A stretch of 64,000 bases of DNA from NCBI RefSeq assembly GCF_001194135.2, contig NC_068997.1, positions 4,892,207-4,956,206 on the forward strand. The letters run 5' to 3'. This stretch comes from Octopus bimaculoides (Eukaryota). The notes beneath the pieces were generated by a model, which searched no databases, had not been told where the DNA came from, and saw only the letters and a program-made list of their open reading frames with translations. Positions 4,020 through 56,558 of the stretch are shown here, piece by piece. Position 1 is the first letter of the stretch. Every line of letters begins with the position of its first letter. Both the position numbers and the translations under genes were made by a program.

Positions 4020-6172
4020 TAGATTAGCCCTCTGGTCAGATACCAAAGAGGTGGTTGAATGGTTTAAGCTTCTAGAAATCAGCAAGCCCTGATTCATAGT
4101 ATGAAAAATTCTGATTTGTCCTGACACGAAATAGCTATAATACTTGCTGTGCAAGCCACATCAGTAGATTTTGATGATAGATTAGATAGAGAGAATGCTT
4201 TTGATATAGTGATGGGATCATCTGACTCTGCACAGGTCACAAACTTAGTTGGAATATATATCCTTTCATTAATCTAGTCTTCCTTTCTGGAAGTAACAGG
4301 GGTGCTATATATGGATGATGCCCTATTCTTTCTGGACAGAAGTAGTAAAGTACAATTAGAAAGGCATAGGAACCATTTCTTTAGCTTTTTTAAAAATTTA
4401 GGACTAAACATTAATATGGGAAAGGATTATCGTAGAGTAACTTTTCTTGATACTGGATTATTCAAGCCATTTCATAAGCCAAATGATCATATCAAGTACA
4501 TAAATGTAGCATCCAACTATTCACCCTCGATAAAATGGGGATTAATTAAGAATATTTCTCCAAAAATTTCTAGATTATCTGCTAATAAAAACATTTTCAA
4601 ATCACATGCTGCTTTAGCTAGAGCTGGATACCATGAGAAAATTCAATATATACAAAATGCAGGCATACACAAAACTGTCAATTCCTACAATAATAATTAC
4701 ACATTGTACACCATCATAATGTTAAGGTATGAGAACTGACTCAGATCAGGAAGAATTGGTCAAGGCAATAAACTACCAACATAAACTCATACACACATGA
4801 CACAAGAATCCTACTGCAGATAACACAGTAAATTGTTCCAATCCTGTACAACACACTAGATGAAATAAGCCAGACAACAGATATAGGAATCATGATGTCC
4901 TCTGTACAAACCATATTTCAGTTTGCACATTTCAACCAAGATCAATGGAAAATTTTTTGCCACTTTAGACAAATATTTCCCTAAATATAATAGATACCAT
5001 GCTACCTTTAATCAGCACACCAATGAAGGTATCCTACACTAACTCTACTAATTTAGAGCAGCATATGCACCACATGAACAATAGTAAAATGCAACAACAG
5101 TTCAATAACCCACTTACTTTATCTAACAAACATATACATCTAAATACCAACAAAGGAGATGTAAACCGCAATACAGCCAAATTATAATAGCAGAAATGAT
5201 TATGATATAGCGAAAATGGTAACAACATCAGAAAATGAAGTCAGGACTGCCATATATACAAATAAATATAACTGCTCATGCAGAGATAAATCAAAATGCC
5301 CATTGAGTACAAATCTTGTATATAAATGTACCGTGCACACAAGGGGAGGACTGTATGTCTACATTGAGCAAATGGCTGATTCATTCAAGAATTGTTATCG
5401 CAACCATGTTGCCAACTTCAAGAAACTTTGGCTGATTTTGTGCAGCAACTTAAGGAAGATAAAATTAAGTATAAAATAACTTGGTCCATAGTAAGGCACA
5501 CAAAACCATATAATATCATTTCCAGGAGATGCCAACTCTGCTCCAAGGAATCCCCTGTCTATTCTGTGGACCAGTGATCATTAATAGAATTTCTGAAAAA
5601 CTCAAGATGCCTACATGCTTATAAATGTACTTTCGCACAATGCAGTGGCAATGAATTTGAATAACTGTTAACATAATTTACTTTAAGGTATGGATGAAGT
5701 AAGCTTAGCTTTAACTTCCCATTCTAATAAACATCAAGTAGCTATTTAACTCGCTGTGTGAACATATGAGCATATGCTTACATCTTCATGGATGCTTGTA
5801 TGAGCAAGTGAACATGTGCAATACAATGTATGTGAAGGCATTTATACATCCATATCCATTAACGGTTATTTTTAATACATTTTTCGCTGTATTGCATGTT
5901 CATTTCTTTTTTGCATCTGTTATATATATATGCATCTTCTATATGAATGAAGCTGTACCCTCTAATTTGCTGCTTTTCTTTACACATAATGAAAAGATAC
6001 ATTGTGGAACTGTTATTTTAATGAGTTACATCTATTTATCACCTGAAGAGACACATCTGCACAGTCAGATGCTTCTGAAGCAGTTGTTAAGTACCCCACA
6101 TGTGAGGGATCAATGCTAGATGTGTTGAAACAATTATAGTGATTAATAAAAATTCTCATATCTTCCATCTCG
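4020..6172 (+). mobile_element. Decayed Penelope-like retroelement (RT, GIY-YIG endonuclease and 3' pseudo-LTR)
   Basis: RT: MGSSDSAQVTNLVGIY...LYMDD...TFLD...KPFHKPND..YIN..SNY; endonuclease region YNCSCRDKSKCPL..NLVYKC...YVYI(E)...F...YRNH, then KITWSIV..TKPY...RRCQLC.KE; hammerhead motif at 6038-6143. Confidence 0.85.
6038..6143 (+). ncRNA. Type I hammerhead motif at the Penelope 3' end (mutated)
   Basis: ATCAC-CTGAAGA-G-ACACATCT...AGATGTGT-T-GAAA-C-AATT-A-TA-GTGAT; helices I and II pair perfectly; the C15.2-G16.2 pair is broken. Confidence 0.7.
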
Positions 6173-8404
6173 TATATATATATATATATATATTTATATA
6201 ATTAGCTGCAATTTGCAATTTATACCACTCTGTCATGTGTTTAGTGTAAAAAATTGTCAAAGGTCATAGAAAATTTAATGAACATCCACAGAAACTCCAC
6301 TGAAAATCTAAAATTTATTTAATATATATTCAATAATCATTTTAGTGTTTATTCAACAGTTATTTAATCTTATAAAGTTGTTTTTATTTATTTTCTTTTA
6401 AAAAATAATTTTCAGAAATAATGAAAGAAACATTTTTTCACTTTCTCCAAGTTTACAAGTTTTTTTCTTGTCCAAACATTCATAATATATTTGTGTGTGT
6501 GTGTGCATGTGTACACATACATATATGTGTGTATATATGTAAACATCAGTGTGTGTGTGTGTGTATAAATAATAAGGAGAATGGAGATTTTTCACATCCA
6601 TAATTTTATTTAACAGTTACTTACATCTTTATAGGACCTACATGTGTTTCAACTGCAGCAACTGCATATTGTTGCGTATGCAACCTAGCATCATGGTGCA
6701 GTTTCATTAGTGTCCTTACCTTCTGCTATTTTAAAATAGAACTGAAGGAATCAGCAAACTGAGTGAATAAAGTGTTTTTTTTAGGGGGAGATATGGGTGC
6801 CTCTATTAATAGTTGTAGGAATCTGAACTTCGGGTTCACCTCTGCTAAGTGTGGTAGGTGAAGCAAAACATAGTCCTAAAAATAGGTCATGGTTAGATTG
6901 AAAGTTTATGTAGATTTATCATTAATATCAAAAATTTACTATTCCACTCATTACAAAGAGAATATTCTTAGTGTAGAGGTATTCTATTACATTTGATTTA
7001 TTTTTTGGTTCTTGGTTTCTCAAATGTTATTATAATAATTTTTATTATCATATAAAGTGTAATGTGTTTATTTAAATTATTTAAATGTAAATTTTCTTGT
7101 ATGAAGGCATCTTAAAGTACATCCTGCTTTGTGTTTATTAGATTAAATTTAGAAGTGAAAATTTAATACATTTCTTCTGCACAAAAGTCACATCCCTTAC
7201 CTCCTATTCTATAAGATTTAGTTTTGTTAATAATATCCCAGCCTATCAAATATACTTTGTTACTATCTTTCAGTGACCAAATTAACTTACGAAGGCTAGT
7301 GTTATTTTTATTTGCCCCTATATCTAAAAGAATTTTCATGGTTAGCTATTCTTTATTAGATAAAACATGAGCTATCACCTATATAAAAATACTCTTTGTC
7401 TCCAGAGCTAACATTGCACCAGTAAACCACATTTTTAGTCTTACATTTGAAATTTAAAGGGCATCATCTATTCCTTGCATAATCAAATATTTATATAAAT
7501 GTGTGTGTATGTATATTTACAGTAATGTGTATATATGCACACACATACACATGCAATTTAAATCTAAATTGCATGACAAATAACCATTGTTCAGAACATG
7601 TTTGTCTTATACATCCACAGAAAAACACTTTCAGGAAGACTTTTATGATTGTCCAAGTTTCCCTTGACCAGCCTCCATAGCCAGAAAGATTAAGAGTAAA
7701 ACATAACAGAAGAGTTTATTCAAAAGGTACTTATGTCATCTTACAAGTATTCATTAATAATTTAAAAAATAAATATGTTATATATAGAAAATCTTATAAG
7801 CAGATTACATTATCAAATCTTCAGAGACTGTAACTCTCATAAGTAACCTTTAAGATATATACAGGACTATAAACAATATTACAGTAACAACAACCATATC
7901 TACAGACGTTATGGTCATTCATACCATAACATTGTCTGCTATTCAGTATAAACCTGAAAATGTAACTAATGAGAGTAATGTAATCTCTGAAGAGTTGATA
8001 ATGTAACCTGCTTATAAGATTTTCCTCATGAAATGCATTTTATATTTCATTATTAATTAAACACTCGAGAGATGATATAACTAAATAATTTATGAACTAA
8101 CTCTCCTATTTTGTTTTATATGTATTATATATACAAACACACATGTTCATACACACACACACACAANNNNNNNNNNNNNNNNNNNNNNNNNNNNNNNNNN
8201 NNNNNNNNNNNNNNNNNNNNNNNNNNNNNNNNNNNNNNNNNNNNNNNNNNNNNNNNNNNNNNNNNNTTTGTATGTATGTTCTTCACTTCTCTTTTTGGTT
8301 TCAGAGTAAATTTTGACTAGCCACCAACTTGATAACAAGGTTGAAAAGGAAATTATCTTTTTTTAATCATCATCCTTTGAATTTTAAGAAGGTTTTGTAG
8401 ATGT

Positions 8405-10885: not shown

Positions 10886-11589
10886 NNNNNNNNNNNNNNN
10901 NNNNNNNNNNNNNNNNNNNNNNNNNNNNNNNNNNNNNNNNNNNNNNNNNNNNNNNNNNNNNNNNNNNNNNNNNNNNNNNNNNNNNNNNNNNNNNNNNNTG
11001 TGCCTAGAGTAGAAAAGAATATTTATGAGTTCCTTCACCACACCTACTAAATCTAAACGAATAATAAATTAATGCAAAAAAAAATCACAGCGGTGCATCA
11101 GCATGACCGCAGCTCTGAGCTAAAACTACAGCAAAAAAAATTGGTGAACGGAAAATATCGATAACCCGATTCCTTTTGGGATTTCCCAATCAAATTGTCT
11201 GCAACTCATTTTCAGNNNNNNNNNNGGGGTGAAAAATCAATAAACTGATTCCTTATGGGGTTTTCCATTTAATCAAGATAAAAAAAAATAGATAAACTGA
11301 TTCCTTATAGGACTTCCCACTAAAATTCACTACACCCCATTTTCAACCATAACTTTTACCAATTTTGATGTATTTTGTTCAAACTTGATGCCAGCATTAC
11401 TTAGGACTCATGGGATTTTTGAATGCTTTAAGTTCTTCAAAAACGAAAAATAATAAATAACAGCGGTGCATCAGCATGACCGCAGCTCTGAGCTAAAACT
11501 ACAGCAAAAAAAATTGGTGAACGGAAAATATCGATAACCCGATTCCTTTTGGGATTTCCCAATCAAATTGTCTGCAACTCATTTTCAGC

Positions 11590-19916: not shown

Positions 19917-20283
19917 TTTTACTTCTTTCAGTCATTTAACTGTGGCCATACTGGAGCACGACCTTAAAGGGTGTTAGTTGAAGAAATTGATCCTAAGACT
20001 TATTCCTTGTAAGCCTAGTACTTATTCTATCGGTCTCTTTTGCTGAACTGCTAAGTTATGAGGGCATAAACACACCAGCATCAGTTGTCAAATGATGGTA
20101 GGGAGACAAACACAAACACACTCACACATATACAACAGGTTTCTTCCAGTTTCCATCTACTAAATCCACTCACAAGGCTTTGGTCGGCCCAAGGATATAG
20201 TAGAAGACACTTGCCCAAGGTGCCACGTAGTGGGACTGAATCTGGAACTGTGTGGTTGGGAAGCAGGCTTACCACACAGCCAC
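19917..20283 (-). mobile_element. tRNA-headed SINE family A (representative near-full copy)
   Basis: Head GTGGCTGTGTGGTAAG...GGTTCCGGGTTCAGTCCCAC (A/B-box-like); tail CAGCATGGCCGCAGT...TGACTGAAACAAGTAA; other copies near 3010-3200, 9200-9360, 23615-23830, 25466-25623, 33785-33950, 41128-41290, 46292-46790, 54560-54800, 55720-56075, 58738-59098, 62765-62920, 63300-63590 and 63800-63955. Confidence 0.8.
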
Positions 20284-20318
20284 AAATAAATGAATGCATG
20301 TATACATTTGTCTGTCTG

Positions 20319-20374
<56 letters not shown>

Positions 20375-20378
<4 letters not shown>

Positions 20379-20833
20379 GCCTCACCGAGGCGATGACTAC
20401 GGACCGAGACCTTTGGAAATGGGCTGTGCGTGAGAAGACCCGGCAAGCCAAGTAAGATCGTTGCCAGTGCCCCTGGACTGGTTCTTGTGCGGGTGGCACA
20501 TGAGATGCACCATTTTGAGCGTGGCCGTTGCCAGTACCGCCTGACTGGCTCCTGTAGGATTTTCGAGCGAGATCGTTGCCAGTGCCCCTGGACTGGCTTG
20601 TGCGGGTGGCACATAAAAGACACCATTTCGAGCGTGGCCGTTTTCGTGCGGGTGACACGTAAAAGCACCCACTACACTCTCTGAGTGGTTGGCGTTAGGA
20701 AGGGCATCCAGCTGTAGAAACTCTGCCAAATCAGACTGGAGCCTGGTGTTGCCATCCGGTTTCACCAGTCCTCAGTCAAATCGTCCAACCCATGCTAGCA
20801 TGGAAAGCGGACGTTAAACGATGATGATGATGA
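20375..20833 (+). mobile_element. Young 5'-truncated RTE LINE insertion
   Basis: LGLTEAMTTDRDLWKWAVREKTRQAK* then a CpG-rich 3' UTR and (GAT)n tail; homologous to 2550-2860; retained CpGs suggest a recent insertion. Confidence 0.85.
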
Positions 20834-24567: not shown

Positions 24568-25378
24568 NNNNNNNNNNNNNNNNNNNNNNNNNNNNNNNNN
24601 NNNNNNNNNNNNNNNNNNNNNNNNNNNNNNNNNNNNNNNNNNNNNNNNNNNNNNNNNNNNNNNNNNNNNNNNNNNNNNNNNNNNNNNNNNNNNNNNNNNN
24701 NNNNNNNNNNNNNNNNNNNNNNNNNNNNNNNNNNNNNNNNNNNNNNNNNNNNNNNNNNNNNNNNNNNNNNNNNNNNNNNNNNNNNNNNNNNNNNNNNNNN
24801 NNNNNNNNNNNNNNNNNNNNNNNNNNNNNNNNNNNNNNNNNNNNNNNNNNNNNNNNNNNNNNNNNNNNNNNNNNNNNNNNNNNNNNNNNNNNNNNNNNNN
24901 NNNNNNNNNNNNNNNNNNNNNNNNNNNNNNNNNNNNNNNNNNNNNNNNNNNNNNNNNNNNNNNNNNNNNNNNNNNNNNNNNNNNNNNNNNNNNNNNNNNN
25001 NNNNNNNNNNNNNNNNNNNNNNNNNNNNNNNNNNNNNNNNNNNNNNNNNNNNNNNNNNNNNNNNNNNNNNNNNNNNNNNNNNNNNNNNNNNNNNNNNNNN
25101 NNNNNNNNNNNNNNNNNNNNNNNNNNNNNNNNNNNNNNNNNNNNNNNNNNNNNNNNNNNNNNNNNNNNNNNNNNNNNNNNNNNNNNNNNNNNNNNNNNNN
25201 NNNNNNNNNNNNNNNNNNNNNNNNNNNNNNNNNNNNNNNNNNNNNNNNNNNNNNNNNNNNNNNNNNNNNNNNNNNNNNNNNNNNNNNNNNNNNNNNNNNN
25301 NNNNNNNNNNNNNNNNNNNNNNNNNNNNNNNNNNNNNNNNNNNNNNNNNNNNNNNNNNNNNNNNNNNNNNNNNNNNNN
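24568..25378. other. Assembly gap (largest)
   Basis: N runs at 8167-8266, 10886-10998, 11216-11225, 24568-25378, 33028-33292 and 40444-40543. Confidence 1.
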
Positions 25379-33027: not shown

Positions 33028-33474
33028 NNNNNNNNNNNNNNNNNNNNNNNNNNNNNNNNNNNNNNNNNNNNNNNNNNNNNNNNNNNNNNNNNNNNNNNNN
33101 NNNNNNNNNNNNNNNNNNNNNNNNNNNNNNNNNNNNNNNNNNNNNNNNNNNNNNNNNNNNNNNNNNNNNNNNNNNNNNNNNNNNNNNNNNNNNNNNNNNN
33201 NNNNNNNNNNNNNNNNNNNNNNNNNNNNNNNNNNNNNNNNNNNNNNNNNNNNNNNNNNNNNNNNNNNNNNNNNNNNNNNNNNNNNNNNNNNNATAGAATA
33301 AGTATCAAGACTTTAAAATAAAATAATAGGGTCGATTCGTTCGACTAAAATTCAAGGAGGTGCCCCAACATGCTCACAGTCTAACGATTAATAAGAAAAA
33401 GATAAAGGATATTCTCTCTCTCTTTCTCTCTCTCCCTGTCTCTCTCGGCGAAACTTCGAAATCAGTCAACCCAT

Positions 33475-40350: not shown

Positions 40351-41648
40351 CTTAACCCATTCGCATTCTGGTTTGTCAAATGTAATGCTTATTTATTCAC
40401 AGTTTTGAATTAATAATACATTTTGTAGCTTCAAGATTTCAATNNNNNNNNNNNNNNNNNNNNNNNNNNNNNNNNNNNNNNNNNNNNNNNNNNNNNNNNN
40501 NNNNNNNNNNNNNNNNNNNNNNNNNNNNNNNNNNNNNNNNNNNGATTGTTTTTTGTTTTTTTCAGACAGTGAGTTAGAAATGCGGACAAATATAGACAAA
40601 TATATACATAGGCAGACAGGCAGAAAGGTAGGTAAGTAAGGAGCTAGATAGAAAAACATTTTTTTAAATTCTTTTTCTAACCACAGTCACTGCTTAGCTG
40701 ATCATGTGTCCTACTACTTGTTTCACTCGGGTACATATTTTAGCAATCTCTATTCAATAAACCACTAAGTTACAAGACAAAAAATGGGGCATGACATACA
40801 CAAAACACCAATTTTAACAGGGTGTAGAAACCAAGTCAAAGTAGGCATTGGAGCATGATACAAACTTCAAACTTATCAGATTCTGCTGAATCATACAACC
40901 CATGCCAGCATGGAAAATAAATGTTAAACGATGAGGATGATCTATATTATATATATCATCATCATCATTTAGCAGCCGTTTTCCATGCTGGCATGGGTAA
41001 GACGGTGCGACTGGAACTGATACATTGGAGAGCTGCAACAGGCTCCAGTCTGTTTTGGGTTGGTTTCTACAGCTGGATGCCCTTCCTAATGTCATCCAAT
41101 ATATATAAATATATATATCAAATGAGCATAGGCATGGCTCTGTGGTTAAGAAATTCATTTTGCAAACACACAGTTTCAGGTTTAGCCCCAGTGCACAGCA
41201 CATTGAACAAGTGTCTTCTACTATAGCCCTGGGCCAGCCAAATCCTTGTGAGAGGTTTTGACTGACAGAAACTGAAAGCAGTCCATTTATATGTGTGTAC
41301 ATGAGACAGAAAGAGAGAGAGAGAGAGAGTGTGTGTGTGTGTGTGTACATGCACATGTGTGTATATGCATGAGTGTTCATATCTCCTTGTCTTTATATTG
41401 TGCATTACATGTAAACAAATGTCGCTCATACAAGCAGTGTCATTTGTTTGTAATATTCCAAGAAGAGTATACCTAACCATTTGTGCTGTTCGTGTTTACA
41501 GGATCAGGAGAAATACAACAATTTTGCTTGGAAGTAAGTGAGGGTTGATGACAGGGAGAGCATTTAACAGTAGAAAATCTGCCTCAACAAATTCTGTCTG
41601 ACCCAGGCAAGCATGGAAAGGTAGGCATTCAAACAACAATGATGGCAT

Positions 41649-49097: not shown

Positions 49098-50086
49098 ATA
49101 TTTTGAAGTGGTTAAAAGTGGTGTCCCATTGCAATCCTGTTGAGAAAAGTATTTTTATCATATTCATAGAGTTCTCTCTCTCTCTCTGTTTTTACATGCT
49201 CATATACACACAGATCTCTATGAATATGATGAATACTTTTCTCAACAAGATTGTAGTGGGACACCATTTTTAACCACCCCAAACTGAGAAAATAATCCAC
49301 TGTTAGAGAAAACAAATGGATCATAAGAAGTCCACAAGTGTCTAGTTAAGGATGGAAGAAATAAGCAGAGATATCAAAGACACTAAAAGTGAGAAGAGAT
49401 AAGAGGGCTGAGCAGAGCTATGAAAATATGTTAACAGAGCAGCTCGTGAATTCTTGCTCACAAGTGAAAACTGAGAACAGCAGCAAAAAAGTTTGGGTAA
49501 TTTTGTTCTAATTCCATTTGCTCCAACAGATTTGTGAACTGATAAATTTTGGCAAGAAAAGTCAAAACAAGAGTTGTATTTTACTTCAATATAGGAATAG
49601 ATAAGATGATCATGGTTGGAACACTTGATTATAAGTGTCTACTGGATTGGGGTTGACCTGGGGCTAAACTTGGTTATGAAAATAAAAACATTTAAAAATT
49701 ACAAGGTCATAACCAATGTAAACAAAGTTGTTGACAGCTGGATTGTACACAGGACCTTCCAGTTCCCAGAACTTCTTGACTATTCAACTATACTGCACTT
49801 GCAATTACTAATACTATATAGCTTTAAAAGGAAAATGAAATTCTCCTAAATGATTAATAACATTCTATCTGAAAATTCCTGTCCACACCCAGCTCATTCA
49901 GGAGAAAATAAACCTACAGTTTGTTTAAGATCTTATGTGGAAGTGCTTAGAATGTATTCTCTAAACAAAAAAATAAACCCAACTTTCTATAATATGAGAT
50001 AAAATAGACTCTGAACATAAAAAGTATATTTGCTGTAAAATATGTGTTTGTACCTGTGTGTGTGTGTGTAGAACATATATACTTAC

Positions 50087-50184
50087 ATACAAACACGGCA
50101 TATATATACGGTTTCCTAGGATGACATCAACTAATTCATCTGAATTACAATCTTCTCTGAAAAGAACTTCACAATTAAATATTT
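50087..50184 (-). CDS. DRG2: DRG2 exon (KIFNCEVLFREDCNSDELVDVILGNRIYMPCLY)
   Basis: acceptor ttctttaacgacattccag|, donor |gtaagt, 98 nt, phase 1/0. Confidence 0.97.
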
Positions 50185-52245
50185 CTGGAATGTCGTTAAA
50201 GAAGGAAAGAAATTCATGACTCTACGATCATAAACCGAATACCCGAAATACTACACTACATGCCTTCTCTGCTCCAGGGAAAAACAACTGCAGTTTTAGA
50301 AGGTTGCACATGGGAGATCATTAGAGATTATGAAGGCTGGCATTTGTAGCAACTTTGAGGGTTTGAACAGTGTCTCTTCAAATGTAAACTTTCCTTATAT
50401 ATGTGCAATAAATACACACATATATAAACGTATATACACACACACTCAATGAAGTTTGATGGCACTAACTTTCTTCTGGCCTGAGTAGGCCAGAGTACTG
50501 TTGAGTTTGCAAGTGTTAATAAGTAGACATTATTTTCTGATCAAAACTGACCAAGAGTTAAACAACATTTATAAATAATGACAGATTCAAAATATCTTAC
50601 ATATTAAAACTGAAAATGTGTGTGTGTGTGTATGTATCGGTATGTCCCCGTTTTGTGCCAAAACAGCTCAACCGATTTTTCTTAAACTTCACATGCACAT
50701 TGCTTATGTGTCTGGGGAGGTTTTAAGTATAACGAGGAATAATATTTGGGTGTGGGTGAATAGATGGAGTAACTATAACTCTCATCTCAAGTTTGCATAT
50801 GCGTATGTGTGTTTGAAGGTATGTGAGCGAATGTTACTAATGGGCAAAAATAACACCCTCTTGCAGGTAAACGAAGTGAGGAACCATAGTTCGGCACGGG
50901 TAAACAGGGGGAGGAACCACAGTCTGGCGCAGGTAAACGGTGGGAGTAACTATGACTCTCAGCTTATGTTTGCATATGCATGAGTATGTAGGTGGGTGTG
51001 TGGGCGGATGTTAGAAATGGGCAACAATTACACCCTCTTGCAGGTAAACGGAGTGAGGAACCATATTTCGGCGCAGGTAAACGGCGAGTAGCCATAGCTC
51101 TCAGTTCAAGTTTGGGTATGTGTGTGTATGTAGGTGTTTGAGGGTGTGTAGGCGAATGTTACTAATGGTAAAAATTTCCACCACCTTGCAGGTAAATGGC
51201 ATGAGGAAGCGCATTACAGCGTGGGTAAACGGCGGGAGTAACTAGCAGTCCCAGGCCTAGAAGTCCACAATGGAGATCTAGATTGGATTTTGCCAAAGAG
51301 CCATTTTGGCTTCTAAAAACGTTGCAGCCAGTGCAATCAAGAACAGCCTCTTACTGCATTTGCCTGGGGATGTGAAAGTCTATAAATCAGTAGACACCAT
51401 TCCCAATCAGGATGAGGTTGTTGATTAACCCACTGAATTTTTGAATTCCTTGGAGCCTTCAGGTGTACCTCCACATATTCTTACTCTTAAAGTAGGTAGC
51501 CCTGTTATGCTGATAAGGAATTTAAATCCACCGACATTGTGCAACGGTACACGCCTTGTTATCACAAAATTACTTCCCAATGTCATTGAAGCAACGATGA
51601 TGGCCATCTGCGGTAAAGGTCAAGATGTCTTCATACCGCGAATACCCCTTCTGCCTTCGGCTGCTGACTTAACGTTCACATTCCGCAGAGTACAGTTTCC
51701 AATTCAACTCAGTTACATCATGTCCATTAATAAGTCCCAGGGGCAGTTGCTGTCTGTTATTGGACTTTACTTAGCCAAACCATACTTTTCACATGATCAA
51801 CTGTACGTTGGCTGCTCAAGAGTGGGTTATAGGAACAGTTTACATGCCTTCAACCCCCAGGGGAAAAGTAAAAATGTTGTTTATAAGGAAGTTTTGTAGA
51901 CTTGCTGTACTGACACCATATTTCAGTCCTACATTATTGCTGATACAATTTTTGTTGCTTTATTTTTTCACTTGATTGTTATCATAATATTACACATGCA
52001 GTTCCCTTTAAGAGTTACTTAGGTGTCAGTCTTGCCATAAAGTGTGAAAGGTGTTTAAGGGAGCGGGGGTGTTAATCACTTTATTAGTTTCAGAGCCTTT
52101 CCAAACTAACAAACCCAGGCAACGCCGGGTACGCCTGCTAGTAAAAATAACAGAAGAATATTGTAATAAACTTGAGATCATTAATTAAGGAGTATTAGAA
52201 GTAATAACATTTTTTTTCCGATAATATATTTTAAAAAAAGGATAC
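50185..52245 (-). other. U12-type (minor spliceosome) GT-AG intron of DRG2
   Basis: 5' site GTATCCTTTT; branch-like TTCTTTAAC at 50203-50195, ending 10 nt before the exon; no pyrimidine tract between branch point and AG. Confidence 0.88.
50595..52141 (+). mobile_element. Internally deleted Helitron carrying a Pif1-like helicase C-terminal fragment
   Basis: Termini A|TCTTAC...CTAG|T; subterminal hairpin ACCCAGGCAACGCCGGGT at 52113-52130; ORF 51441-51899 with [33 protein letters not shown] and [13 protein letters not shown]; upstream part has a stop and a frameshift. Confidence 0.92.
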
Positions 52246-52336
52246 TATATTCATGCAAAATTAATTGCACCATTTTTTCGTTGATTTTTGTTAGAGGCAC
52301 TGTAGAGTTGAAAGAAATACCACCACCTTTCTTTTG
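52246..52336 (-). CDS. DRG2: DRG2 exon (QKKGGGISFNSTVPLTKINEKMVQLILHEY)
   Basis: ttttcag| acceptor; donor A|gtatcctttt (U12 consensus); 91 nt, phase 0/1. Confidence 0.97.
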
Positions 52337-52991
52337 CTGAAAATATAATGGAAAACAAAAATTTAGCATATCGTCATTGTTTTAACATCTCCGCTTTTCC
52401 GTTTTAGCATGGATCAGACAGATTTCAGTGAGGCAGATTTTCTATGGCCAGATAACCTTCCGGTCATCAATATTCACTTATTTCCTTGCTCAAACATGTA
52501 CTTACAGAAGACCGACAACAAAGGAAACCAATTGCATGATGGCAACACTTGTTTACAACTATCACATGAAGTCAAAACAAAGAGACATAACACATAAATA
52601 TGAGGTCTGATTAATAAGTATCCGGACTGTTGCCATAGTAACAAAGTTAAAGCATGCAGTATGAAGCTGCTTGGCACAGATTGATCTTGAACTCTGCTGT
52701 GCATGCACACTAAGGACCAAAATCGTGTTACACGGTGTAATTGACTGTGAAGAAAAATAACTAAACATTGCAAGATATTTCCCACTGTGCCCCACTGATT
52801 CTATCACCCACTTCACGTGTAATCAATAAAATACTGATGATGGTGATGATGATGATTGCATCAATAGGCACTATGTCTCTAATCTATCAGTAAACTGTAG
52901 CTCATCTATTGTGACATTAATGAGTCTTTCAAGAAATACTAAAGAAACAAAGAATTCAGCACAACAGAGAAAATGGTAATGTGGCACTTAC

Positions 52992-53064
52992 TTTGAAATA
53001 TATATTAGGTTTCTTTCGGTTCAATCGGATTCCTACAGACTCAAGTTCATTTTCTAGAAGTTCC
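52992..53064 (-). CDS. DRG2: DRG2 exon (ELLENELESVGIRLNRKKPNIYFK)
   Basis: ttttatgcag| and |gtaagt boundaries, 73 nt, phase 2/0. Confidence 0.97.
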
Positions 53065-55164: not shown

Positions 55165-56558
55165 CTGAAAATAAAGAGTTTTACAATTTAATGCACCAAC
55201 TTAGACATTACAGCTTATATTGCTTGAAGCGTTACATTGTGGAAATTTGGCAGGAAAAGTAAAACACCTGAATGAAGAAGATACAAAGGAATCTCTATAA
55301 AGTCATTCGACCTGCTAGAAATAACAGTCAAATCTCTCTCAAGTTTAGGTTTATCTTCTTAAATAAGGATGCATTGGATAATGTAGGCCCAGAAATATTG
55401 TCTGAATAACAGATGTGATGATCTTTACTGGAATACCTTTGATTTTAGGTCTGCTGAATTAAGACTCACTTGGGGTTAAACAATATATTTGGTTTCAATC
55501 CTGTTAAAACACATTCCATACCTGTGCAGGTGGGACAAGTATTTGTAGCAGAATGACAGTTTTTACACTTGATTGCTGTTCCTACTTCTAATCAATCATC
55601 TGTAACCAGAAAAGGTCAGTGCTGCTCTACACACTGAGGCAAACAAGGCAATAGCTCAGAGCAGTTAAATCTGAGGGGTACCACACAAATTCTGAACAAC
55701 TTATACAAAATTTCTTCAGGCATGATTATGTGGTAAGAAGCTTGCTTCCCAACCACATGGTTCTGGGTTCAGTCCCACTGTGTGGCACTTTAGGCATGTG
55801 TCTTCTACAATAGCCTTGGGGTGACCAAAGCCTTGTGAGTGGATCTGGTAGACGGAAACTGCAAGAAACCCATCGTATATATGTATTAAATGATGATGAT
55901 GATGATGATGTGCCTTTGTATCTAAGTTTGTCCCCCCACCCACTGCTTGGCAACCAGTGCTGGTATCTTTATGCCCCTGTAACTTAATGGTTTGGCAAAA
56001 GAGACATAGATGAAGTACCAGGCTGAAAAAGAAAATAAGCATGGCCAGTCTAATGACTGAAACAAGTAAAAGATAAAATTGTAAACTTAGTAACTGAGAA
56101 GGCAGGTAAGGTGGAACCAAGGAAGAAAGAGTAGAGGGTGAGGTACAGTGGTGGGCGTGCAACAAAGAAAACTAGGGGGGCCTTGAACTGTGATGAGCTG
56201 TCACATTATTTGCCATGAAACATTTCAAATTTCATCAGAGAACACATTTTCTCATTGACATGATGAGAGTTCCACAACTTTTGCTGAATAACCTGCATAG
56301 ATGATTTGTTTATAGTGATCAAACGTCTGTGTTGCACATTAGCTTACACGCTCCATCAAATCAACAATGTCAGTATAGGTGCATGCTGTGCTACATGCCA
56401 GACATCAAGTTATCTCGTTAATATACATTTGTAAGTTGGTTTAAAGAGGATGATGGCTGGAGGAATTTGTAGAAAAAATATTGGAAAAGGAGGTATACAT
56501 TTTAGGACCAGCCTAGACCTCTGAATACTTTGGCACCAGACTTTACCATAATCTAGAG

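Follow-up and report, generated by a model that had tools for sequence, protein, structure and literature searches.

Helitrons typically capture gene fragments or filler DNA, and the Helibat families and one insect family are said to combine gene-fragment capture with non-autonomous deletion derivatives. Oyster Helitron/Helentron elements (CvA/CvE/CvG and Cg170/HindIII) carry central satellite-like tandem repeats of a kind that is common in molluscs (PMC11136912). Modules derived from ribosomal DNA (rDNA) have been described in other transposable elements, namely SINE28 (from 28S), Pokey/mPok (repeats of ~200 bp derived from the intergenic spacer, IGS, and lying upstream of the transposase), short interspersed elements (SINEs) with a 5S promoter, and Cassandra/Ajax (PMC10946416, Table 2). 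The table in that 2024 review includes no Helitron, and its sole 28S-derived case is a SINE. A recent repeat annotation of Octopus vulgaris reports a Helitron expansion at ~25 million years and is silent on rRNA-derived content. The present study concerns a stretch of 64,000 nt from Octopus bimaculoides (contig NC_068997.1), here called the window, in which an internally deleted Helitron copy holds a tandem array of short units resembling a segment of 28S rRNA. All coordinates are those of the window unless another locus is named. A preliminary description, made from the letters of the stretch, had stated that no account of such an arrangement was known to its author, and a literature search on Helitron together with 28S, rDNA and capture also found no description of a Helitron with 28S sequence.

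The array consists of eight related units of 26-34 nt, all on the plus strand and within 50733-51244. Of the two types of unit, B is similar to the 28S segment GCGCGGGTAAACGGCGGGAGTAACTATGACTCTC over its full length, whereas A has only the first half in common with B (GCAGGTAAACGG...) and then continues with GAGGAACCATAKTTCG. The most 5' pair, an A0 remnant (50733-50749) and B0 (50750-50783), is the ancestral 28S-derived doublet; it is orthologous to 5288-5354 in L002 and 5140-5176 in L001, two O. sinensis copies of the same family (CM016859 and VCDQ01002157, respectively) that are numbered by their own loci. Three higher-order units follow on the plus strand, each made of a TG-rich spacer, an A unit and a B unit, with one additional A in the first. 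Higher-order unit 1 (50784-50960, 177 bp) is composed of a spacer at 50784-50862, A1 at 50863-50893, A1' at 50894-50926 and B1 at 50927-50960. Unit 2 (50961-51102, 142 bp) has its spacer at 50961-51039, A2 at 51040-51070 and B2 at 51071-51102, and unit 3 (51103-51244, 142 bp) has its spacer at 51103-51187, A3 at 51188-51218 and B3 at 51219-51244. A repeat search recovered these three higher-order copies with spacings of 177 and 148 bp and identities of 71-81%, and Tandem Repeats Finder (TRF) reported a 33-nt period at 50864-50950, over A1-A1'-B1. B3 is truncated at ...GTAACTA and is joined to helicase DNA, with helicase homology starting at 51245-51249, immediately 3' of the unit. No further copies were found inside the window. 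The preliminary description had listed eight motifs, three higher-order units of about 142-177 bp and a direct join of the last copy to helicase-coding DNA, and each of these was found where it had been placed, with B0 and B3 delimited as given here.

When the units were compared with 28S rRNA, B1 was identical to the reference at 32/34 positions and B3 at 25/26, or at 26/27 with the preceding A included. B2 matched at 27/32 with a 2-nt deletion, B0 at 26/34 by hand count over 50750-50783 (25/33 in the alignment), and the A units at 21-25/33. The 28S reference is the sequence printed in the R2 target oligonucleotides of two papers (CAAGCGCGGGTAAACGGCGGGAGTAACTATGACTCTCTTAAGGTAGCCAAATGCC...; PMC13000458; bioRxiv 10.1101/2024.11.11.623112), and octopus 28S is presumed to be identical to it. 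B1 and B3 together have three mismatches, every one of them CpG-to-TpG or CpG-to-CpA, which fits the low CpG observed/expected ratio of the window (0.33, at a GC content of 35%). A majority consensus built from B1, B3 and the B unit of L002 agrees with 28S at 34/34 positions, which makes the ancestral B unit an exact 28S copy. The 28S 30-mer, allowing up to three mismatches, occurs once in the window, and 0/100 dinucleotide shuffles of the window contained it. Rfam searches of the window, of L001 and L002, and of 49500-52500 with E values up to 10 allowed gave no rRNA family, and the only matches were microsatellite-like 'miRNA' noise. Taken together, the alignments indicate that the source of the motifs is the helix-69 segment of eukaryotic 28S, helix 69 itself being GGGAGUAACUAUGACUCUC. 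The identities of 32/34 and 26/27, the CpG-type character of the mismatches and the rDNA origin of the 34-mer, all proposed beforehand, were upheld with the published oligonucleotides as reference and with no comparable match in the shuffles.

Judged by a Pif1-like helicase, a Rep domain in L002, and a 3' hairpin followed by CTAG and T, the element that carries the array is a canonical Helitron. The whole copy is non-autonomous and internally deleted, spans 50595-52141 (+, ~1.55 kb) and has both ends in common with L001 and L002 at 85-95%. Its 5' terminal module (50595-50732, +), which includes a short (TG)n run, corresponds to 4990-5116 of L001 at 87% and to 5124-5267 of L002 at 89-95%. Where in 50581-50602 the 5' boundary falls is uncertain; the probable candidate is the TC at 50595, preceded by a host A at 50594. 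This A and TC are also present in L002, but 10/14 nt upstream are common to the window and L002 too, and L001 is overwritten by (TA)n there. The helicase pseudogene (51245-51899, +; Pif1-like, 2B domain) was recognized from octopus protein matches and Pfam. It starts in the middle of the open reading frame (ORF), at ...(Q)(V)(F)PGLEVHNGDL..., contains frameshifts and stops, and represents the C-terminal third of the RepHel helicase (...PGLEVHNGDLDW..CQRAILASKN...), ending at 51899. Its last 152 aa form an open ORF (51441-51899) that matches the Pfam Pif1_2B_dom at E = 2.9e-17. Pif1-like proteins of O. bimaculoides and O. sinensis are 75-88% identical (~80%) to the fragment, and tblastn helicase matches begin at 51251. 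The 3' untranslated/terminal region (51900-52141, +) has a subterminal GC-rich hairpin at 52113-52130, short in length, then ...tacgcctgCTAG with the terminal CTAG at 52138-52141, and is followed by a host T at 52142. The end ...ccgggtacgcctgCTAG followed by T also occurs in L001 and L002, and in all three copies the flanks past CTAG and T are unrelated. The Helitron_like_N Rep domain was detected in the longer copy L002 (E = 1.5e-36).

The 28S-like units lie within this Helitron, as the preliminary description had it, and are 28S-sense on the strand that codes for RepHel. A minus-strand exon at 52992-53064 (translation ELLENELESVGIRLNRKKPNIYFK, with AG and GT splice signals) matches yeast Rbg2, which we take to be the DRG2 orthologue, at E = 7e-6 and Rbg1 at 0.014. 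Because the match to Rbg2 is the better one, the Helitron is placed in an intron of a DRG2-like gene. It sits in the intron adjoining that exon, antisense to the gene, with its 3' end 851 bp from the exon, and the DRG2-like pre-mRNA would carry the units antisense to 28S, which had also been anticipated.

Three copies of the family were compared, those in the window, L001 and L002. The family is dispersed, since two O. sinensis loci carry both the 5' module and the 3' part at 85-95%. Both match the window from 51249 to 52141-52149 at 85-86% by BLAST (~90% by MAFFT) and over the ~140-nt 5' module (50581/50602-50732) at 87-95%. The 5' module of L002 leads into ...atgttcGGGTAAACGGCGGGAGGAATAACATTTGG GCGCGGGTGAACGGCGGGAGTAACTATGACTCCC..., an A unit and then a B unit, and this B unit matches 28S at 32/34 over the full 34-mer (30/31 in an alignment beginning 2 nt in). 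L001 has the same A+B doublet in a decayed and partly deleted form. The doublet stands ~140 nt from the 5' end in all three copies, and the one in the window (50733-50783) shares a derived GTGAAC state with L001 and L002 and shows heavy CpG decay. These comparisons indicate that the 28S piece is a feature of the family and not a local accident. The array of three higher-order units was found in 0/2 of the other copies, both of which have the doublet only. The idea that the repeats belong to the element family holds for the doublet, present in L001 and L002 at the same distance from the 5' end; the array was seen in the window copy only. Exact-pattern scans for the array junction in a metagenome collection, and for the 5' module in metagenome and viral collections, gave 0 matches.

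The copies differ in what follows the doublet. In L002 it is an N-terminally truncated Rep domain and then the helicase, in L001 it is ~100 nt including degenerate (CCCTAA)n and then the start of the helicase domain, and in the window it is the array and then the helicase C-terminus. Of RepHel, L002 retains Rep and Hel, L001 retains Hel and the window retains the Hel C-terminus. The copies are internally deleted non-autonomous derivatives that keep both termini, which is the usual pattern.

Two further observations concern this boundary. At L001:5179-5300 the doublet gives way to a degenerate telomere-like run (ccctaaccctatccctaatcctaaccttaaccctaacc) and then to helicase, and the DNA ahead of that run has a weak colinear alignment to 28S 3' of the R2 site (p ~0.015). 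Also, the content changes right after a B unit in 3/3 copies (window 50783/51244; L001:5176; L002:5354), each time with a different partner, and the 28S repeats may be a recurrent breakpoint.

The account that we consider likely is passive capture of a 28S fragment, followed by tandem duplication and neutral decay, without any role for the repeats. An octopus Helitron family would have taken up a short piece of host 28S at a 5' subterminal position, upstream of the RepHel ORF. This piece would have been at least 34 nt long (GCGCGGGTAAACGGCGGGAGTAACTATGACTCTC, helix 69 included) and probably entered either by gene-fragment capture or as filler in the course of DNA repair. Tandem duplication would then have produced the A+B doublet that is seen in all three examined copies. 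In the lineage of the window copy, slippage or unequal exchange may have multiplied the doublet and a TG-rich spacer of ~80 nt to give the three higher-order units. An internal deletion then fused the last of these to the interior of the helicase ORF, at the junction present in the window. A dead, non-autonomous copy would have been inserted antisense into the DRG2-like intron and would have decayed neutrally since, mainly through CpG transitions in a methylated genome. The decay looks neutral, and CpG transitions dominate it. At this locus the repeats are most likely without a role.

A different timing is given by the view that the array is a purely local, post-insertion expansion of the doublet at the DRG2 locus, a one-off minisatellite. 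It is in keeping with this view that neither L001 nor L002 exceeds the doublet, that a protein search with the 121-aa ORF of the array found no relatives, and that the 11.5% divergence of units 1 and 2 at non-CpG sites (array units being compared over their non-TG-rich part) does not significantly exceed the ~7% found among family copies (2.8% for transversions alone). However, the differences between unit 3 and the other two units amount to 14-18% of non-CpG sites, or 11-12.5% when transversions alone are counted, and are significantly larger than those among family copies (Fisher p = 7e-5 to 0.013). B1-B3 also lack the GTGAAC change of B0 and of the L001 and L002 B units and have the 28S state GTAAAC, so the array units are not plain copies of B0. 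In addition, the array was present when the element took its current form, because its last unit forms the deletion junction with the helicase. Although the counts are small and the DNA is rich in repeats, the divergence of unit 3, the GTAAAC/GTGAAC difference and the B3-helicase junction together suggest that the first duplication, at the least, took place in the source element and predates this insertion. A purely local expansion is rated as rather unlikely. Some of the same results, with others, also weigh against passive capture without a role. If part of the array is older than the insertion, an array-bearing sub-lineage seems to have persisted, which is compatible with a benefit to the element. 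Since B1-B3 do not share the state of B0, L001 and L002, the array is not a simple set of B0 copies. The internal deletion starts right after a B unit in 3/3 copies, which simple neutral capture does not explain. A further point is the source of the spacers, which resemble neither the 28S sequence on either side of the 34-mer nor the L001 DNA after the doublet, and whose similarity to the element's own 5' module is marginal (p ~0.05-0.06) and likely reflects common TG-richness. Finally, the mechanism of capture is one that we infer, and the family was examined in three copies, with the array in one only. A separate candidate, in which the entire higher-order unit would be a decayed 28S stretch of 110 nt, was rejected (spacers against flanking 28S, z between -1.2 and 0.75).

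If the repeats did benefit the element, which is the main rival to passive capture, they could be a working 5' module of the Helitron family, serving as a promoter, as an element of the leader, or as an rRNA-like tag by which the transcript associates with the nucleolus or with ribosomes. They would lie in sense orientation in the leader of the RepHel transcript and would be kept, and expanded in some lineages, as an aid to expression or transposition. The doublet does occupy the same subterminal position in 3/3 copies and precedes the Rep ORF in the most complete one, and the reconstructed ancestral B unit is 28S throughout its length. The divergence within the array exceeds that between copies, which suggests persistence in the source lineage, and transposable elements use other rDNA modules, such as the 5S promoters of SINEs and Cassandra (PMC10946416). 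However, no conservation signal was seen, as B0 (26/34 between copies, against 95% for the adjoining 5' module) and the L001 B unit decay faster than that module, and divergence of the A unit goes back to the common ancestor. A protein search with the Rep region of L002 led to three Helitrons of other families, one on an ENA contig (L003, a more distant relative), one in O. bimaculoides (L004) and one in a cuttlefish (L005), and the 28S motif is absent from all three. As single-stranded DNA the helix-69 hairpin is weak, with no unusual stability (-1.4 kcal/mol, z = 0.1), and neither the helix-69 unit nor the tandem units folded better than shuffles in that form, so there is no structural argument for a rolling-circle signal. 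A working module is for these reasons unlikely, and more unlikely still is the bolder version in which the helix-69 repeats are a 5' module under selection. Such a module might, for example, be an rRNA-mimicking leader, or a DNA platform resembling the upstream site that 28S-specific retrotransposon proteins bind. It might link the element to rDNA, to the nucleolar compartment or to rDNA-targeting machinery, and would account for the spread of array-bearing non-autonomous copies. The reading to which we give the least credence of all is that the piece is the 5' junction of R2 or of another 28S-specific element, or a decoy or homology patch for the R2 protein or for I-PpoI-like nucleases. We take the R2 nick in 28S to fall after TTAAGG and before TAGCC. 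This position agrees with the bottom-strand cleavage products listed for R2 (PMC13000458). The 34-mer lies at roughly -40 to -7 relative to the nick, and clear homology in the window copies stops before the R2 site, as the preliminary description had pointed out for both the R2 and I-PpoI sites. The region from -40 to -7 is presumably part of the upstream DNA contacted by R2 proteins. However, the last clearly homologous bases, CTCTC, lie 6 nt before the nick, which argues against an R2 junction, and no R2 or hepatitis delta virus (HDV)-like ribozyme family was found after any copy (Rfam; window, 49500-52500, L001 and L002). There is also no R2 5' untranslated region or reverse transcriptase after any copy, no reverse transcriptase ORF near the array, and no R2 was seen in the window. 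In L002, TTAAG stands 5 nt after the B unit, and the L001 DNA after the doublet has a weak colinear similarity to downstream 28S across the R2 site (score 29 against a shuffle mean of 19.7; 15/1000 shuffles scored as high or higher, p ~0.015), which, if real, would mean capture from an uninterrupted 28S gene. As for I-PpoI, whose recognition sequence we take to be the 15-bp CTCTCTTAAGGTAGC, only CTCTC (5/15 bp) is present at the ends of the B units before unrelated spacer begins, and no cleavage site is formed. Of the earlier proposal that an rDNA or R2 5'-junction piece had been captured, the 28S origin stands and the R2 junction is unsupported, and no evidence was obtained for a decoy or homology patch for rDNA-targeting machinery.

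Several other features of the window lie apart from the array. An ORF at 4302-4739 (+) that contains a YMDD-type motif matches Pfam RVT_1 weakly (E = 3.5e-4), with a score under the gathering threshold, and is probably a fragment of a retrotransposon reverse transcriptase. Two long ORF-like stretches, 40814-41380 (-) and 55716-56165 (-), have the peptide pattern QGFG.P.AIVEDTC..C...GLN in common and probably belong to a single family of interspersed repeats; another stretch, at 20081-20668 (-), is similar in style. Just 3' of the Helitron, 52396-52485 is a 90-bp inverted match to 41530-41619 at 73% identity, probably another short interspersed repeat. The six N runs (8167-8266, 10886-10998, 11216-11225, 24568-25378, 33028-33292 and 40444-40543), two of them exactly 100 bases, indicate that the window comes from a gapped scaffold assembly.

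The locus adds a Helitron, and a cephalopod, to the few mobile elements that carry rDNA-derived modules, and it illustrates one route by which short rRNA-like sequences can scatter in a genome and multiply into minisatellites. In practice, such copies can give spurious 'rRNA' matches, attract rRNA-derived small-RNA reads, and confuse the annotation of rDNA or R2 junctions in octopus assemblies. Should the repeats prove to serve the element, this would be a rare co-option of rRNA-coding sequence by a DNA transposon.

Compared with known systems, the element resembles an R2 5' junction in having the 28S segment immediately upstream of the R2 target, but the segment ends 6 nt before the nick, is followed by neither R2 nor a ribozyme, and is embedded in a DNA transposon. 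Like the transposable elements with rDNA modules, it carries rDNA-derived sequence throughout its family, and its repeats, like those of Pokey, precede the transposase gene of a DNA transposon. However, the source here is the highly conserved helix-69 coding segment and not the IGS or a Pol III promoter, and a function is not evident. With the oyster elements it shares a mollusc host and an internal array flanked by conserved element ends, and its units of 142-177 bp are near the 164-166 bp of the oyster monomers (PMC11136912). It differs from them in its canonical Helitron 3' end, with CTAG after a hairpin, in its partial helicase ORF and in the identifiable 28S-derived core of each unit, and its array is known from one copy. 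There is also a likeness to Helitron gene capture and to Helitron deletion derivatives: this is a rolling-circle element with a hairpin and CTAG at its 3' end and a short piece of a host gene, in a family made up mostly of internally deleted copies with both termini. What sets it apart from the usual capture is that the piece is rRNA-coding DNA, only ~34 nt long, located in a 5' subterminal position and multiplied in tandem. We regard the finding as a new example of where these known phenomena meet rather than a new kind of system.

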